Source of the DNA: Podarcis muralis
Taxonomy: Eukaryota
Direction of reading: 5' to 3'
Assembly (NCBI RefSeq): GCF_964188315.1
Contig: NC_135668.1
Span: 55,056,001 to 55,120,000, forward strand
DNA: 64,000 nucleotides
Shown here: positions 55,380 through 63,768 of the stretch, piece by piece
Layout of the letters: each line of letters starts with the position of its first letter
Position numbering within the stretch: the first letter of the stretch is position 1
Notes under the pieces: generated by a model
Databases searched by the model: none
What the model saw: the letters and a program-made list of their open reading frames with translations, nothing else
Told to the model about the DNA's origin: nothing
Position numbers and translations under genes: made by a program

Positions 55380-55392
55380 ATGGGGCTCAGCG
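55380..55392 (+). CDS. EHMT-like gene, putative first coding exon
   Basis: gccATGG Kozak, upstream in-frame TGA, MGLS + G|gtgagg; phase-compatible with the next exon. Confidence 0.55.
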
Positions 55393-55769
55393 GTGAGGCA
55401 GGTTTGGTGGGGAGGGGTTGGAAATGGGAATCTTGGCACAGAGTGGGGGGCTTATTCTCTGGGCGGGGGGAGCAAAGGAAACTGAGGAACATAGTGAGCG
55501 CCCTCCAAGAAGTGTGTGTGTCTCAATTGCTCACCCCCCAATGTAGGAGCCAACTCCTATTGGCTGAAGTCCCTTTGGCCTCCCCAATAACATGTTTGAG
55601 GGGGCCAGACCCCTCCCCAAAGTTGATTGCCATTCAAATAGTGCACATGCACTGCTTCTTGTGATTGATTATATGGGATGGGGCTTATCCCCACCCCCAT
55701 ATTTTATTCAGCTTTGCACCCCAGCCAGCATCAAGCTAACTGCATGTTGTATTAACCTTTTCCCCACAG

Positions 55770-55813
55770 AGAGTAGAGGTTTGGGGCCTGGCGAAGCCCC
55801 CTCTGAAAGACAG
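55770..55813 (+). CDS. EHMT-like gene exon 2
   Basis: ttttccccacag| ... CAG|gtaagg, 44 nt, ESRGLGPGEAPSERQ. Confidence 0.65.
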
Positions 55814-56136
55814 GTAAGGAATGCTTCTGGGCAGAGACCCCCTTGGGGTGCTTGCTGACGTACCTGATGGGGGGACTGGCTTCTTTCCTCCCTCCCTCCC
55901 TCCCCACATTGCTGAGCAAGAGGGGAGCCTCCATCTCCCTGACCCTTGGCCGTCTGCTCCATTGCCCAGCAAAGCAGATTCTCCAGGTCTCTGGCCTTGA
56001 CCCTCTGTGAGGAGGAGAAGGGGGTCCCGCAGACTCCCTTGGGCTGGGCCACTCTCAGCCAGGACGACCCGTTTGTGGGGAGGGCCAGGGCAGGGGGGCA
56101 GAGGCTGCTTGGAGGCCAGTTGCTTCCTGCCTGCAG

Positions 56137-56256
56137 GTGGACGAGGAGGATGAGGCGGTGGCCGCAGACCCCCTTTTGCACATGGAGGCCAGGAAGGGCC
56201 ACTGTGACACAGCCCGCCAGCTCCTTGCCCAGGACCCAGAGGCCCTCAACAGCCAG
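56137..56256 (+). CDS. EHMT-like gene exon 3 (ankyrin repeat)
   Basis: VDEEDEAVAADPLLHMEARKGHCDTARQLLAQDPEALNSQ|gtaggc. Confidence 0.8.
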
Positions 56257-56453
56257 GTAGGCCAGCCAGCGGCGGCAGAGGATGGCTTGGAGGGCCCCCT
56301 GCCCCACAGGCTGTGGTGGACCCCCTTCCCTTGGTGGGAGGGCTGGGATGTGCCTGCGATGGGGGGAGATGACTCCTTGCCCCCCTCCAAGGCCCCTCAC
56401 CTGGACAAGGCCCACCCCACAGCTGTTCTCTTGGCTTCCCCCTCACTCTCCAG

Positions 56454-56558
56454 GACGCCAGTGGCCGGACGCCCCTTTTCTGGGCCACGGAGTACAGACA
56501 CGAGAGCCTGGTGGAGCTCCTGCTGGCCCACGGAGCAGACCCAGCTGTGCGGGATCAC
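56454..56558 (+). CDS. EHMT-like gene exon 4 (ankyrin repeat)
   Basis: DASGRTPLFWATEYRHESLVELLLAHGADPAVRDH, aligns with GLP DDGGWTPMIWATEYKH. Confidence 0.88.
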
Positions 56559-56829
56559 GTGAGGAATTCGCCCTCCGATTGCGCTGCGAGGCTGGATCCC
56601 TGGGGGGGGGGGGAAGAATGAATTGGGGTGGGGGTATTCACTCCCTATTGCCCACCCAGACAGAAGACCAGTTGGGAGCAGTGATGGACCTGCAATTTGG
56701 GGCCCCTGAAGCTTAATATGTTATGGAAGCCCCTTCGCAACCTGTTAGAAGGTCTGTTAGAAGGGAGGGGGGCATAGCAGGGCAGCCAACTTTCCCCTTC
56801 CTTCCTCCCTTACAACATCTGTGCTACTT

Positions 56830-57300
56830 ACTCTATTTTTTATATTTTTAAATTAATTTTCAACATTACTTTCAACAATAATTAAACATATTTTGAACAT
56901 CTTATATATTTAAATTTTTTTGGACTTCCATCAATCTCATCTGGAAATTTTCCAACCTAATCACTAAATATACATTTCTCACTTCTGCAATTACTTTTGA
57001 CTCATAACTAACATCACTATTCTTTCTCTAATCTGCAATGCTTCATACATTTCTCCTTACAAAACTTCTTGTGGTCCTACTAGCGTAATTTGTTGATTAC
57101 AGTTGCTCTTCAAATAATTCATATACTTCTTCCAATCTGCTGTAAATCTCTGGTCCCGCAGGTTTCGAATCCTTCCTGTCATTTTATCTAATTCTGCATA
57201 ATCCATTAATTTTGTCTGCCAGTCTTCTTTCGTCGGAACTGTGCTCCTTACTCTCAAACTTTGTGTGGGTTGATATATACACAACAAAATATTAATCAAT
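56830..57300 (-). mobile_element. L1/Tx1-type LINE 3' fragment
   Basis: PTKEDWQTKLMDYAELDKMTGRIRN...VL* followed by an A/T-rich 3' UTR. Confidence 0.65.
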
Positions 57301-58161
57301 TTGAGTCAAAGCAATTGGCCTCCATCATGTGGCTCAAATGGGGTCCCCCAAATTAAGCCATGTGGACTAAAGTGGCTTCTGGGGCCCCTCCGGCCCAGAA
57401 GCTGAAGCTTTGTTCCTTTCTTAGTAGATCTGCCCCAGTTGGTAGGAAGAGGGCAGAGCTGAGCGGGGAATCTCCAAAGTGGGCTGGGCTGCCAGTGTGG
57501 ACAAGCAGCTCTCACAGGCACACATTCCCTGCTGGCATACTGCCACGCGATGCCACGGCACTGGCAGGGGTGGAGGAAGGAGTGGGGGTGGGCCGCCCCT
57601 GGTGTCACCACTGAAGGGGGTGACAAAAAGCCAGGTGGCACTCACCCAAATGGTCCGCCCGCTGCCTCTCCCTCAGCTGTAGGGCGGCTAAGAGGAGGCA
57701 GGCAGACTCCTTGGAGGCCCCGTGGAGCGTACTGCCCCAGCTGGCCCCGCTCCTGGGCACATGGCAGGCGTGCCTCCCCAGTCGCTTGATCGGCTTGCTC
57801 TGCCCCTGGGCACTGGAGGGGGTGGGCTCTGCCAGCCAGCGAGGAAGCTGGAGGCACCTTGTGGGGCTGACCAAGGAGAGGCTGTGTGTGACTGTGTCTT
57901 GCAACCAGAGGCAGGCAGGGAGGCTGCAAGGGAGGGCTGCTGCTCACTTGTGCCAGGCGCAGGTCCTCCTACCTGGAGGATCCTGGGGGCAGCAGGCCGT
58001 GGGGGCCTTGGGGTGCACAGACTGCTCCCCTGTGGAGAAAGGCAGCAAGCCTTGCAGAGTCACACAACCCCTCGAGGGTGGCCTGGGAGGTGCTTGGCCG
58101 AGGGCTCCCCCAGCTCAGCTCACCCCATTCTCTCTGCTGCCCACCCCCCTTCCCTCCTTAG

Positions 58162-58316
58162 GAAGGGAACCTCTGTCTGCACTGGGCGGTATATGTCGGC
58201 AGCCCCTCCATCGCCAGAATGCTGCTGGATGCCGGCTCCGATGTGGATGCGCTGAATGGCCAAGGCGACTCTCCCCTGCACCTGGCGGCCCAGGAGAGGC
58301 GCTACGAATGTCTCGT
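58162..58316 (+). CDS. EHMT-like gene exon 5 (ankyrin repeats)
   Basis: EGNLCLHWAVYVGSPSIARMLL...GDSPLHLAAQERRYECLV, aligns with G9a EENICLHWA...GDTPLHIAARE. Confidence 0.9.
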
Positions 58317-59408
58317 GTGAGTGCCGCCCACCCATGTGGGAATGTTGTGGACAGTGGGAGAGGATATATTAATTAAATATTATCCTTCCTCACTCATGCT
58401 AGTACATTCCCCTGTGTATTGCAAGAAGCTTGTAGATTCATTAGAATCTCTTGAGTTAAGCAATCCAGTCTGGCTTCTCCAGATTGGGTTTGTTCCTGCT
58501 AAATTCCCTTTTAATTCCCTCTTAAAAAGAATAAAGACACAACAGTCTTCTCTTAAAAGTAAGAAGTTTACTTACATTCAGTTCACAGTATGATCCTGAA
58601 GGCAGCCTTTAGCTTGTAGTTACAGAAGAGAGTGTGAGTTTATCCCATATGGGGATTGAGCCCATGCGCTGCTGGCTGAGAGCCAGCAGACAGCAAAAGA
58701 CATCAAGAGAGCAGCATCAAGAGAAGCGTCAAGAGAGAGGGAGAGGGAAGATGGCTGCATGAACAGTCCTTTTACGGGGTCTCCCAGGGTCACGCCCATC
58801 TACCTGGTCACACGCAGGGGGAGGATGCTCCAGAAAGGTGTGACAGGAAGTCCTCCTGGCACTGGAGTAACACCCCCTTGTGTGTCCACTCTGGGCAAAC
58901 AGGAAATGTTGTATTTGACTGCTACATCCCACAGCCCAGTGGCCCCAGCCAGGCCCAGAGCTTGGCTGCGGAGGAGAAGCAGCCATCGCCCAGAAGCTCC
59001 CTTGCGCCCTTGGCAAGGAGATGAGAGGTCAGCACCCGCCTCTCCCTTGGCCTGGCTGTGCAGGGTGGGATAGTCAAAGAGCAGTATAGGCCAGACGCCC
59101 ACTCTTTGCTAGGCTGGCACATGAGAGGCGCTGAAGCTCTAGTCTGCCAGAGAGGACTCTGCAGTGAGAGATGCTCCCGCTGTGCCCTGAGAGCGAGGGG
59201 GCCCAGCTCTGTATCTCCTCCAACCTGCCTGGGCTCATCCTCTCTTCTTCGTCACTTTCCACCCAGCCAACTGTGAGAGCATCTGCCTTAAAGCAGCCGG
59301 GATTCCTCCATCAAAAAGGCTCAAACCAGCTTCCCTTTGAAGCTGCAAAGGAATGACACCCTGCTGAACTCACAAACCTGAGGAAGGAAGGATAATATCT
59401 AGCAAATA

Positions 59409-59845
59409 CCGTATTGGCCCGAATATAAGCCGCACCTTTAAAATTGGGGGGGGGGGGGAGAGAAAGACAATACCTGAATATAACCCGCTCCCTTAAAATT
59501 CTGCAGGCACTCACACCTGTAAATGGCAGATGTAGAATAAAATCCTGTGGGTACTAGAGAGGACCCGCCAGTGGGTTAAACACTTGTTCATAGCACCGTA
59601 AATGCAAATAAAAAACCAATACTGCACTGTAAAATTCGGGGAAAGCTATGAATGACATTAGAATTGATTGCACAACAGTCTCAAGCTTGCAAATCGGCAA
59701 GAAAACATTTTGACCGCATGTCTGTTTCAGCAGCTATATCGTAAAAGTCAATCTTTGTAAGGTCGCGAATTTAAGCCGCACTTATAACTTTTCACGGTTG
59801 GAATTTGGCAAAAAGAAAGTGCATCTTATATTCAGGCCAATACCG
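59409..59845. mobile_element. Tc1/mariner MITE
   Basis: TA|ccgtattggcccgaatataag ... cttatattcaggccaataccg|TA. Confidence 0.8.
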
Positions 59846-60222
59846 TATATCCTCTCCCAGCATCTATTCTTACCCCAACAGAGAGCAAGCTCCTAGCCAC
59901 TCTGAGCCAGATGGGAAGGATGTGGGGGTCAACCTAACTGACCCCCAGGGAGTCAGGAGTTGCAACGGGAGAGGAGGGAGGTCTGGGGGGAAGCCTGGCT
60001 AGAGGAGAAGGCAGCAGGAAGCTTCCACTGGGAGGGGGGCTGTTTGAGTGGATGGAGAGCAAAGGAAACCGCCCCCCAGAGGTTCTCCCCGGGGCTCCTC
60101 TCTGGGTAGGTGGGGCTGCCACAGCCCTTCTTAGTCCTTCCTTGGTGCTCCAGCTTCTGACTGGAGGACCTGGGGGCTCCCCCCCCCCAGGGTGCTCAGC
60201 TGCCCCTCTTTGCGTCCCACAG

Positions 60223-60372
60223 CTTGCTTCTCGCCCACGGCGCCAAAGTCTCCCTGAAGAACAGAGCCGGCCAAGTGGCTCTGCAGTGCTGCAAGCCCAG
60301 CTCCCCTTCCTGGCGGGCCCTGGAGGCCGCCTCTGCGCGGCCCCCCCACCCGACGGAGAGGCTCCTCTGCAG
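60223..60372 (+). CDS. EHMT-like gene exon 6
   Basis: LLLAHGAKVSLKNRAGQVAL...TERLLCR, 150 nt. Confidence 0.88.
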
Positions 60373-60471
60373 GTGAGCGGCACCCGGGGGCGGCTGGGCT
60401 AAGGCGGGAGGGACCCCCTCCCTCCAACCGGGCTGCAGCTGTGGCTCAACGGCCGCTCTTGTCGTCCCCAG

Positions 60472-60619
60472 AGACATCTCCCGGGGCTTTGAGCAAGTCC
60501 CCATCCCTTGCGTCAACGGGGTGGACGAGGAGCCGGCGCCCGGAGCCTTCCTCTACGTCACGCAGAACTTTGTGTCGGACTCTGCGGTGCTTCCAGCGAC
60601 GGGCTGGGGCAGAAGTCAG
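60472..60619 (+). CDS. EHMT-like gene exon 7 (pre-SET N-flank)
   Basis: [23 protein letters not shown], aligns with G9a [23 protein letters not shown]. Confidence 0.92.
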
Positions 60620-61201
60620 GTGAGGGGCATTGTCCACCCACTCCTCTTCCGTGCTCCAGGGTGAGTCGGAGGGGCTGAAGTTGCTGGGTGGGCAGGGAAG
60701 CCCCACCATCCATCCAGACGCCCCACAACTCTGGGGCGTCTTCTGAGCAGCCCTCCAAACCAGAGACATTTCATAGGGCTGCGTTTCGACCATTCAGGCC
60801 TCCTTGTGCTGTTTGAAGGCATCCTCTGCCAACCTGGCGCCCTCCCAAACCCAACAAATAGCATGTTTTGGAAGACCCGGGGCTGACAGGGTCTGTCCTC
60901 AGAAACCCTTGGAGGGCGCCAGGTTGTCGAATGGTGCAGAGAAGTGATGCTGCTCCTGTTGACGTTGTTTCCGGCACCTGGAGCCTTGAGGGTACCCAAA
61001 CCAGGTGGCTTGAGAAGGAAGGATCTGGCGGGCCTCTGCCAGGGCTGGCTCCCTGTAGAGGACCGCCGAAGCAAAATAGTAATAAAAATAAATAATAACG
61101 AATTAGGCGTCTGCCAAGCTGTGGCTGCAGAGTGCCCTCTGGGGGCCTTGTAGGGGCCTGAGCGTGACCCCGAATCGCCTGACCGCCTTGCCTTCTTTCA
61201 G

Positions 61202-61279
61202 CACTGCGAGTGCGCCAGTTCCTGCTCTGCGCCCACCTGCCCGTGTGTCGAGCGCAGCCTGCGCTCCTGGTACACTCCG
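61202..61279 (+). CDS. EHMT-like gene exon 8 (pre-SET)
   Basis: HCECASSCSAPTCPCVERSLRSWYTP. Confidence 0.9.
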
Positions 61280-61373
61280 GTGAGAGCCGCTCCCGCCCTT
61301 CCTGGGGCCAGGCGGGGAGGTCAGCCGGAGCCACTGAGGGCCAGCCGGCCGTTTCTCTCCTCTTGTGGTCCAG

Positions 61374-61495
61374 GATGGCCGGCTGGCGCCAGACGCGGCC
61401 GGCAGCAGAGCCGAGGCGGGCCCCATCTACGAGTGCCACATGCTTTGCTCCTGCGCCAGCTCCTGCCCCAACCGGGTGGCGCAGAGGGGCCTCAG
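61374..61495 (+). CDS. EHMT-like gene exon 9 (pre-SET)
   Basis: DGRL...IYECHMLCSCASSCPNRVAQRGLR. Confidence 0.92.
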
Positions 61496-62521
61496 GTGAG
61501 CCCCCTTTCCCTGGGCCAGGGGCCTGCGGGCTCCCCGGTAAGTTCACCGACTTAATATATAGAGCTGCCCCACAGCAGAAGTACTTTAGGAAGGCAGTGG
61601 GGTGTAGTGGTGAGAGTGTCAGACCCTGGGAGATGAGGGTTCGAATCCCCACTCTGTCATGAAGTTCACTGGGTCAGTCACAGCCTCTTAGCCGACCTCA
61701 CAGGGTCGTTGTAGGGATCAAATGAGGAGGGGGATGAACCGTGGACTCCTTGGAGAAGAAGGTGGGAGACAAATGGAACAGATAAACACTTCTGCTGACC
61801 TGCTTAAGGAAGCTGGAGGGGCCAGCCAGGTGGGCATGTCTGTCACCAGCCCAGAGATCTCCGTGTGGTCGCAGTTGGCACCCGCGCCAGTTGTGAAATG
61901 CGCTTGGTGCCTGGGGAATTTCGAAGGCTGGGTGGGAGCACCCACCAGCCTGGGTCAGATGCCTTGGCACCCTCTTCCTTTGCCCCCTGGCCAAATGGCA
62001 CACGATGGTGTCAACGGCCTCTCCTTCTGAGGACGTTCTTAAGCAGAGCTTGGATGGCCGCCCATCAGGGGTGAATTGGTTTGGACTCCCGCATGGCAGG
62101 GGGTTGGACTAGATGACCCCTGGTGTCCCCCCCAACCTTGCCATTCTGTGATTCTACGAGCAGCCCCTTTCCAGATTCCTGCTTCCCGTGAGGGGACCCT
62201 TTGTTCTTTTCCATTAAGGAGACGGCGCTTTGCGCGTTCAAACGCTGCCACTTTCACAGGGGCAGAAATACTTGCCGCAGCCCTGCGAGAGAAGCAAAGG
62301 AGGGAATCGAAGCCCACCCCCCCTCGCCACTTGGCTCTCCCTCCGTGCCAGCCCACCCAAGTCGCCCCCTTAGAAAAACAACCCCGCTTGCCACCCCGCC
62401 CTTGGGACTCTTGCTTGCCTGCTTCTCTTCTCGCCCCGCAACCCCCCTCGCCCCTCTGGTGCCCAGTGGGGGTCCCGCTTTCCGCTGCCCGAGGTGGGCC
62501 CCAGCACCCTCTCATCCGCAG

Positions 62522-62608
62522 GACGCAGCTGCAGCTGTACCGGGTGCCAGGCAAGGGCTGGGCAGTGCGCACGATGCAGGAGGTGCCCCGAGGAGCCTTC
62601 CTTTGCCA
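62522..62608 (+). CDS. EHMT-like gene exon 10 (SET)
   Basis: TQLQLYRVPGKGWAVRTMQEVPRGAFLCQ. Confidence 0.92.
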
Positions 62609-62700
62609 GTAAGTCCCGGCGGGGGGGAGAAGAGAGGGGCTGAGTCCAGGCAATTCCCCTCCCCCCAAAAAAACCCTCATGGCCCTTTCCTCCCCGCCAG

Positions 62701-62779
62701 GTACTTTGGGGAGCTGATTTCCAGCGCCGAGGCTGCCCAGCGAGAGGACGCCGCCTATTCCTTTGTGGTGGACATGCAG
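62701..62779 (+). CDS. EHMT-like gene exon 11 (I-SET)
   Basis: YFGELISSAEAAQREDAAYSFVVDMQ. Confidence 0.92.
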
Positions 62780-62876
62780 GTGACATTTCCGCCTCCACTT
62801 GGGGGGCGGGAGGGGTTTGTGCCCCCTTCCTGGGGGGCGGGCACTGGAGCTCAGCGTTGCCCCCCTCTCCCCGCAG

Positions 62877-63043
62877 GCGGGCCCCGAGTGCTGCCTGGAC
62901 GGGCGCTTCTACGGCAGCGTGGGCCGCTTCCTGAACCATTCGTGCCAGCCCAACCTGGTGGCTCTGCCGGTGGTCGTGGGGCACGAGATCCCCGGCATCG
63001 CCTTCTTCAGCGCCCGGGCCATCCAGGCGGGCGAAGAGCTGGC
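62877..63043 (+). CDS. EHMT-like gene exon 12 (SET)
   Basis: CLDGRFYGSVGRFLNHSCQPNL...IAFFSARAIQAGEEL. Confidence 0.93.
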
Positions 63044-63512
63044 GTAGGTGGTGCTGCTGGAGAGAAAGGGGGCTGCCGTGGGGTGAAGGGGCCCCCACCT
63101 CCATGCCTGCCCCCTGGACTTGCAACCAGCCAGGAGGCGGGGGGCTTCTCGGACTTCAGTCTCAGGTTTGCCCTTGCAAGACTCAGCCGGGAGGAGGCGC
63201 TGCTTGGAGCCAAGCCACTTGGCGCTGCCCGTCATTAGCTCTGGCGCCACCTGCTGGTGACCTCCCGGGGGCTTCAGCCACTCCCGAATGGGCGCCTGGC
63301 AACCGCAAGAGACGTGACTCTCCGCTCCTGCTATCCCCCGCCCTTGAACAGAGCAGCACTTTGGCTGCAGCAAATGGGGTGGCGAGAGCCGGTCCCGGAG
63401 TGTCCTCTGATCTCCTGCCGGATTGGGGGCGGCGGGAGGGGCCCAGTTTGCCCCCGGCGACGAGGGGAGCGGGCGCCCCGTCTTCACTCGGCGGCGTTTC
63501 TGCCCCTCGCAG

Positions 63513-63768
63513 GTTCGATTACGGCGAGCGCTTCTGGGAGGCGAAGGGCCGCCGCTGGGCTTGCTTGTGCAAGTCGCCCGGCTGCAGATACCGGCCGTCG
63601 AGGGAAGGGCCAACGGCAGACGACGCTGCCGCCGCCGCAGGAGACCCCGGCCTGGGCACTTCCACGTCCTACCCGCTACGCGGCTTCTCGCGCAAATCCG
63701 CGCGGAGCAGCCCGCTGAAGACGGCCCCGCGCCGCTCCGCGCGGTCCCGACGGCGCCCCCTGCGCTAG
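63513..63768 (+). CDS. EHMT-like gene last exon (post-SET and basic tail)
   Basis: FDYGERFWEAKGRRWACLCKSPGC...RRPLR*; spliced CDS 1524 nt = 507 aa. Confidence 0.9.

Follow-up and report, generated by a model that had tools for sequence, protein, structure and literature searches.

The wall lizard Podarcis muralis carries a gene, labeled "EHMT1-like" in RefSeq and here named sEHMT, the 507 a.a. product of which is best explained, judging from its sequence, as a third, shorter member of the G9a/GLP (EHMT) family; in this analysis, it was seen in lizards and snakes only. Both G9a and GLP are drug targets and belong to the best-studied histone methyltransferases, and their specificity is thought to depend on an acidic groove that holds Arg8 and Lys9 of histone H3. 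On balance, sEHMT is probably an active lysine methyltransferase that may no longer recognize this Arg8-Lys9 motif. So far, sEHMT is known only as an automatic "EHMT1-like" or "EHMT2-like" annotation, and literature searches, including searches for "EHMT1-like" and "EHMT3", found no paper on it.

Gene structure and annotation

The sEHMT gene lies within a 64,000-nucleotide stretch of P. muralis DNA (the window, to which all coordinates refer and which contains no N stretches), where its 13 exons span positions 55380-63768 of the plus strand (Table 1). The exons were searched one at a time, and database proteins afterwards served as queries. The exon searches returned a database protein named "histone-lysine N-methyltransferase EHMT1-like", the cluster of which holds the P. 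muralis RefSeq protein P0006. P0006 matches the exons of the window at 100% by tblastn, and eleven GT-AG exons, translated in series, reproduce it exactly; the splice sites are all canonical. Two additional 5′ exons (exons 1 and 2) add MGLSESRGLGPGEAPSERQ, as is found in the 507 a.a. P. raffonei and 504 a.a. P. lilfordi proteins. The encoded protein has, in order: a myristoylation-type N-terminus, four to five ankyrin repeats, a pre-SET domain, a SET domain, a post-SET domain, and a basic disordered tail.

The current RefSeq models of sEHMT are inconsistent, with both split and intron-retaining forms. The newest P. muralis annotation is a split pair: (i) a 225 a.a. ankyrin model, which runs into intron 7 (60620-60661); and (ii) a 209 a.a. 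pre-SET/SET model, which reads past the exon 12 donor to a TAG (63044-63047) and is without FDYG and the post-SET domain. P0002 stops before FDYG, and P0008 and P0017 are frameshifted. In P. raffonei, the frameshifted isoforms X1 and X2 have kept intron 8, which is 94 bases long.

Table 1. Exons, groove codons, and other features of sEHMT in the window.
Feature	Position	Strand	Description
Exon 1	55380..55392	+	Start codon, MGLS and first base of next codon; ATGGGGCTCAGCG then GTGAGG; matches the N-termini of P0004/P0001
Exon 2	55770..55813	+	(E)SRGLGPGEAPSERQ; AG acceptor, GT donor; tblastn with P0004; 100% identity to Lacerta
Exon 3	56137..56256	+	Acidic linker and start of first ankyrin repeat; tblastn, P0006 model
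Exon 4	56454..56558	+	Ankyrin repeat with GRTPLFWATEY; W839 replaced by R, W844 and E847 kept
Exon 5	58162..58316	+	Ankyrin repeats; W877 (CLHW) and D905 (GDSPLH) kept
Exon 6	60223..60372	+	Last ankyrin repeat and linker
Exon 7	60472..60619	+	N-terminal part of pre-SET (DISRGFEQVPIPCVNGVD)
Exon 8	61202..61279	+	First pre-SET cysteine cluster, C-x-C-x4-C-x5-C-x-C
Exon 9	61374..61495	+	Second pre-SET cysteine cluster, C-x3-C-x-C-x3-C
Exon 10	62522..62608	+	Start of SET with KGWAV; G1051 replaced by A, lacertids only
Exon 11	62701..62779	+	I-SET peptide-groove segment: S1074, A1078, A1083, S1086, V1088
D1074 replaced by S	62723-62725	+	Codon agc; EHMT2 alignment
D1078 replaced by A	62735-62737	+	Codon gcc; EHMT2 alignment
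D1083 replaced by A	62750-62752	+	Codon gcc; EHMT2 alignment
Y1085 kept	62756-62758	+	Codon tat
D1088 replaced by V	62765-62767	+	Codon gtg; EHMT2 alignment
Exon 12	62877..63043	+	RFLNHSC (SAM binding, zinc ligand); three-residue loop deletion relative to EHMT1/2; IAFF...GEEL
Exon 13	63513..63768	+	FDYG (catalytic Y1154), F1158, W1159, post-SET C-x-C-x4-C, basic disordered tail, TAG stop
Tail motif PLRGFSRKSARSSPLK	63673-63720	+	Within exon 13
Polyadenylation signal AATAAA	63802..63807	+	34 bases past the stop codon; read directly

Domains, fold, and family membership

Through Pfam, ankyrin (Ank) families, Pre-SET (7.1e-18), and SET (5.7e-21) were identified in sEHMT. The ankyrin domain lies directly upstream of the pre-SET domain, with only the C-terminal part of the repeat array present, and the C-terminal 426 residues of a newt EHMT1 (residues 834-1256) align collinearly with sEHMT at 47% identity. 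An AlphaFold model of residues 160-432 has a mean pLDDT of 87.9, with the lowest confidence in the groove segment (about 79-81), and the best Foldseek matches of the sEHMT model are GLP (49-50% identity, rmsd ~2.2 Å) and G9a, with E ~1e-30 and TM 0.85-0.9. In the alignments and residue table, the nine pre-SET cysteines, the post-SET C-x-C-x4-C, and the zinc ligand C1115 are invariant or nearly so. The motifs for SAM binding and catalysis (Y-x-G, RF-x-NH-x-C, and EL-x-FDY, which includes Y1154) are all present along with F1152 and F1158, and the sole deviation in the window is a GWA in place of GWG, a change in exon 10 that had been noted in the preliminary description of this DNA and was verified by tblastn.

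Compared with human GLP/EHMT1 (2RFI, 3HNA, 7T7M), sEHMT has a common order of ankyrin, pre-SET, SET, and post-SET domains, as well as the same zinc cysteines, NH-x-C, FDY, and lysine-channel aromatic residues. On the other hand, GLP is ~1300 a.a. long, and sEHMT is without its N-terminal half, including PF21533, a Cys-rich/RING-like region of that long N-terminal half which is listed for EHMT1 proteins and in none of the squamate short proteins. Also in contrast to GLP, sEHMT has only the last four to five ankyrin repeats, carries an arginine at the cage residue W839, has lost D1074, D1078, and D1088 (G9a numbering) and in lacertids D1083 as well, contains a three-residue loop deletion, and has a new MGLxES N-terminus, a new basic tail, and a different chromosomal position, between PDIA2 and RGS11. 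These differences apply equally to G9a/EHMT2 (human 2O8J, 3K5K, 5T0K), with which sEHMT has its architecture and fold in common (model identity 43-46%). Two H3-binding features of G9a and GLP are not preserved as such in P. muralis sEHMT: the acidic groove for H3 Arg8-Lys9 (D1074, D1078, D1083, and D1088) is gone, and the ankyrin cage for H3K9me1/2 is altered (W839 to R). Nor is sEHMT a one-to-one ortholog of EHMT1 or EHMT2, as it forms a separate clade and occupies a separate locus.

Distribution, synteny, and origin

Full-length or partial counterparts of sEHMT are present in every major squamate group. They were found in geckos (Eublepharis, Gekko, Paroedura, and Sphaerodactylus), in skinks and cordylids (Tiliqua, Lerista, and Hemicordylus, with two copies each), in lacertids, the amphisbaenian Rhineura, the tegu Salvator, and Varanus, in iguanians (Sceloporus and Anolis), and in snakes (Pituophis, Ahaetulla, Crotalus, Protobothrops, and Ophiophagus), and the reading frames are intact in more than 20 species across all major squamate lineages. 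A word-based, length-limited search, together with the best 150 of the representatives clustered at 50% identity, turned up no sEHMT-type protein in a turtle, crocodilian, mammal, or amphibian.

Two-copy pairs are P0013/P0015 (Hemicordylus), P0020/P0021 (Tiliqua), P0022/P0196 (Lerista), and P0223/P0428 (Anolis sagrei). In Hemicordylus and in Tiliqua, both copies are located on one contig; those of Anolis sagrei are on separate contigs. The groove of the scincoid copies is distinct, being Tyr-rich with Arg or Ser at 1088, and one Hemicordylus copy has Asp at 1074.

The gene order AXIN1-PDIA2-sEHMT-RGS11 is found in a snake (Pituophis) and in Anolis, and PDIA2-sEHMT-RGS11 is found in Lacerta; in the window, sEHMT comes after PDIA2. 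The Eublepharis locus (L004 1-18607) reads AXIN1-sEHMT-RGS11, with no PDIA2 gene called between AXIN1 and sEHMT. Of the five squamates examined, four have the gene between PDIA2 and RGS11, and Eublepharis has it between AXIN1 and RGS11; a gene in this position is not at the EHMT1 or the EHMT2 locus. In addition, the gecko Paroedura has both a normal 1329 a.a. EHMT1 and sEHMT, which indicates that sEHMT is an extra paralog rather than a replacement.

In a maximum-likelihood tree of the pre-SET/SET region, the 24 squamate sequences form one clade with a support of 100/100. The stem of this clade measures 1.15 changes per site, compared with 0.003-0.03 for the end branches of tetrapod EHMT1 in the same tree. 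The clade is placed within the chordate EHMT group and forms a polytomy with EHMT1, EHMT2, the paralogs of the mousebird Colius, and Ciona. Approximately unbiased (AU) tests reject none of the groupings of sEHMT with EHMT1 (p 0.41), EHMT2 (p 0.29), or Colius (p 0.54), and raw similarity alone slightly favors EHMT1 as the parent. The most likely history is that the 3′ half of an EHMT gene was duplicated at the DNA level, in the squamate ancestor or earlier, and that sEHMT then changed very fast along the stem lineage and has been under purifying selection since.

Colius striatus has several tandem, ankyrin-less pre-SET/SET genes on two chromosomes (L001 10001-39896 and L005 10001-40774). These "EHMT1-like" genes (P0027, P0135, P0165) are, like sEHMT, short, lineage-restricted, fast-evolving EHMT-derived paralogs. 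Unlike sEHMT, they have no ankyrin repeats and retain D1074, D1083, D1088, and the QDxRFP loop. They were considered as bird orthologs of sEHMT and rejected, as they are SET-only tandem arrays that keep the Asp residues and were not seen beside PDIA2/RGS11.

The substrate groove

Exon 11 is 79 bases long and is flanked by an AG acceptor and a GT donor. Its first base (62701) supplies the third position of a CAG codon begun in exon 10, and the reading frame that follows (62702-62779, plus strand) encodes YFGELISSAEAAQREDAAYSFVVDMQ. When the exon was compared with all PDB chains by phmmer, the matches were EHMT2 and EHMT1 only; human EHMT2 is the top match and aligns to the exon without gaps. 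The numbering that follows from this alignment agrees with the published names of the G9a groove residues, which are Asp1074, Ala1077, Asp1078, Asp1083, Leu1086, Asp1088, Leu1089, Asp1090, Val1096, and Tyr1097 (PMC7948220).

In G9a, H3 Arg8 and Lys9 are crucial recognition residues, and mutation of Arg8 abolishes methylation. Asp1074, Asp1078, and Asp1088 complement Arg8/Lys9 and bind compounds of the BIX-01294/UNC0638 type, and Asp1083 and Leu1086 are likewise among the residues that bind these ligands (PMC7948220). This literature supports the view, taken in the preliminary description, that the acidic groove binds the Arg/Lys of the H3 tail as well as quinazoline inhibitors, and it is these Asp residues that are gone in the wall lizard: Asp1074, Asp1078, Asp1083, Leu1086, and Asp1088 correspond to S, A, A, S, and V. 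The gap-free alignment and the published numbering thus confirm that the four Asp are replaced by S, A, A, and V, and the same alignment confirms that Y1067, Y1085, and F1087 are kept, both as originally described. Y1154, the NH-x-C motif, and all zinc cysteines are retained as well in P. muralis.

The four Asp residues are invariant in a comparison set of 12 canonical EHMT sequences, ranging from horseshoe crab and Ciona to bird, save for position 1088 in one cod paralog, which indicates that their loss in sEHMT is not due to chance. Among the 24 sEHMT sequences, position 1074 is an Asp in only one (the states are S, N, R, C, P, A, G, E, or D), position 1078 is never an Asp, with Glu in four, and position 1088 is never acidic, with Val in 17 and R or S in skinks and cordylids. 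Position 1083, on the other hand, remains an Asp in 17 of the 24, and is Ala in four lacertids, His in two skinks, and Glu in Anolis. The family-wide substitutions are D1074 to S/N, D1078 to A/G, and D1088 to V. They are accompanied in the groove by L1086 to Tyr (Ser in lacertids), L1089 to Val, V1096 to Glu/Gln, and Y1097 to Cys. Outside the lacertids, GWG is retained except for a GFG in Sceloporus, and within sEHMT the GWA is restricted to lacertids; GWA, GWS, and similar variants are found in long invertebrate EHMT representatives as well. The losses at 1074, 1078, and 1088 therefore date to the sEHMT stem, while D1083 to A and GWG to GWA are recent and lacertid-specific. As to whether the substitutions are fixed across orthologs, a question raised at the outset, those at 1074, 1078, and 1088 are nearly clade-wide, whereas those at 1083 and in GWG are not. 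Similarly, the loss of all four Asp as a set holds for lacertids; across squamates it resolves into three old changes plus one lacertid-specific change.

Two further features of this region vary or differ from EHMT1/2. The Anolis groove segment carries an acidic insert. In the loop before the IAFF strand, encoded by exon 12 (62877-63043), H-Q-D-L-R-F-P-R is replaced by H-E-I-P-G in all squamate short EHMTs.

The net charge of the 35-residue I-SET segment changes from about −10 to −6 in Podarcis, and the acidic residues D1083 and D1090 persist in most squamates, which have in addition acquired E1096. The earlier proposal of a less basic substrate is thus supported only in part: the segment is still net acidic, and most species keep or gain these acidic residues.

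Ankyrin repeats, N-terminus, and C-terminal tail

The ankyrin cage that binds H3K9me1/2 is formed by W839, W844, E847, and W877, and any single mutation of these residues abolishes binding in vitro (PMC4255711). All aligned squamate short EHMTs with ankyrin coverage have an Arg in place of W839, which in P. muralis lies within the GRTPLFWATEY of exon 4. The other cage residues, W844, E847, and W877, are kept, as are the non-cage residues E870 and D905.

The N-terminus of sEHMT follows the pattern MGL[S/N]ES[K/R], with MGLSESR in Podarcis, MGLSESK in Hemicordylus, MGLSGSR in Tiliqua, MGLSASK in Gekko, and MGLN(E)SK in snakes. The N-myristoylation pattern (PROSITE-type) begins with Met-Gly and has Ser/Thr at position 6, with position 3 occupied by a small or uncharged residue. 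With Gly2, Ser6, and a basic position 7, the sEHMT N-terminus fits this consensus, and the protein may therefore be lipidated. The 13-base exon 1, together with about 60 bases upstream, is conserved in Lacerta, Pituophis, and Eublepharis DNA; several annotations miss this exon.

The tail that follows the post-SET domain is predicted to be disordered and contains the motif P-L-R-G-F-[A/S]-x-K-[S/T]-x-R-x-x-P-L in 16 of 18 squamate sequences. The motif resembles the A-R-K-S of H3; position −1 is occupied by Arg in lacertids and by Leu or Phe in most species. When the tail was included in a second AlphaFold run, it had a pLDDT of 34-46 and showed no sign of docking as a pseudo-substrate.

The groove, cage, and tail bear on the possibility that sEHMT is still a methyltransferase of H3K9 or another Arg-Lys site, that is, a truncated and faster-evolving isoenzyme in which D1082, D1083, D1090, E1096, and E1160 compensate for the lost Asp. 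The GLP/G9a fold is consistent with such an isoenzyme, and so are the remaining charge of −6 in the I-SET segment, the D1083 of 17 of the 24 sequences, the D1090 and E1096 of most, and the H3-like S-R-K-S motif in the lacertid tail. However, the family-wide losses at 1074, 1078, and 1088 concern those Asp residues for which the most contacts to an Arg8-like guanidinium are reported, and the groove residues L1086, L1089, and Y1097 are replaced too. The reader cage has W839 changed to R, and the N-terminal regions of EHMT1/2, including PF21533, are absent. An H3K9 isoenzyme is accordingly considered unlikely.

Selection and the catalytic core

Of the sEHMT sequences covering the positions in question (24, some of them partial), all have Y1067, G1069, E1070, Y1085, R1109, F1110, N1112, H1113, and C1115, and the same is true of Y1154, W1159, C1168, C1170, and C1175. 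All SAM-binding, lysine-channel, catalytic, and zinc residues that were checked are invariant or conservatively kept across Squamata. Ratios of dN/dS were determined by the Nei-Gojobori method on codons from each species' own locus. For Podarcis and Lacerta, dN/dS is 0.127 overall (49 synonymous vs. 20 non-synonymous differences) and 0.119 in the pre-SET-to-post-SET part, and it is 0.22 for Podarcis and Pituophis and 0.24 for Podarcis and Eublepharis. The values range from 0.12 to 0.27, the SET part included, with a Fisher p <1e-5 for every pair. sEHMT is under purifying selection. Together with the residue conservation and the fold, these ratios argue for a protein in which the cofactor and lysine-channel residues are still required, and against a pseudogene, a reading that was rejected on the basis of dN/dS and residue conservation. 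The "probably active enzyme" of the preliminary description therefore stands in so far as sEHMT looks like a working enzyme, with its conserved residues, a dN/dS of 0.12-0.27, and a model that superposes on GLP/G9a, while the activity itself is a prediction from these features.

If the substitutions instead reflected a loss of constraint in a decaying, non-functional duplicate on its way to a pseudogene, the very long stem branch, the variable groove, and the inconsistent RefSeq models could all be accounted for. This is highly improbable, as the reading frames are intact in more than 20 species of all major squamate lineages, the splice sites are canonical throughout, the catalytic and zinc residues are invariant, the synteny is conserved, and dN/dS lies at 0.12-0.27 (p <1e-5).

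The main rival to an active enzyme is a regulatory pseudo-enzyme or partner of little or no activity, which would bind EHMT1/EHMT2 through its SET domain, in the way that G9a and GLP bind each other, or other proteins through its ankyrin repeats, and so modulate or titrate the canonical complex. Such a role could explain why the peptide groove is not conserved among squamate lineages, why G1051 could change to Ala in lacertids, and why the non-cage ankyrin residues E870 and D905 are kept, and the catalytic activity of GLP has been reported to be dispensable in vivo (PMC4255711). Nevertheless, a catalytic Tyr, NH-x-C motif, and lysine-channel aromatic residues that are invariant in 24 sequences, along with a SET dN/dS of about 0.12-0.27, exceed what a scaffold would be expected to need, and variants of the GWA/GWS type occur in long invertebrate EHMTs as well. 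The pseudo-enzyme is rated as rather unlikely.

Proposed function

The preferred reading is an active enzyme with an altered substrate. In sEHMT, all the features required of a SET enzyme for S-adenosyl-methionine binding and lysine methylation are retained, while the acidic clamp with which G9a/GLP hold H3 Arg8-Lys9 has been rebuilt into a more hydrophobic groove. Its target could then be a lysine in another context, perhaps with a residue other than arginine before it, and possibly outside chromatin. We infer that such an enzyme would also be insensitive to G9a inhibitors. Four observations weigh against the active enzyme with a new substrate. First, the groove differs among squamate lineages, which could reflect a peptide surface under weaker constraint instead of a single new substrate. 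Second, a basic substrate is possible with a segment at −6 in which most species keep D1083/D1090 and gain E1096. Third, the confidence of the model is lowest in the groove segment itself. Fourth, split and intron-retaining forms are present among the RefSeq models.

A more specific version of the active enzyme, offered tentatively and more doubtful than likely, is that sEHMT is a squamate-only, N-myristoylated, largely non-chromatin methyltransferase, the hydrophobic pocket of which would accept lysines that follow a hydrophobic residue in non-histone proteins, with its own tail as one candidate target. The candidate site in the tail is the motif G-F-A-[L/F]-K-[S/T]-K-R, which by its residues would be an "ARKS" look-alike in which Arg is replaced by Leu/Phe in most species.

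Significance

Squamates provide a vertebrate order with an EHMT paralog that is under selection and apparently catalytically competent, and that has a rebuilt substrate groove and an altered methyl-lysine reader cage. Were sEHMT inactive, it would represent a conserved pseudo-enzyme partner of the EHMT complex. Were it the non-chromatin enzyme with a hydrophobic pocket, it would amount to a natural specificity-switch experiment on a drug-target enzyme. If sEHMT is active, it would show how a new sequence motif can become the target of the G9a scaffold, would supply a natural set of specificity-switch mutations, and would point to a new lysine-methylation pathway in lizards and snakes.
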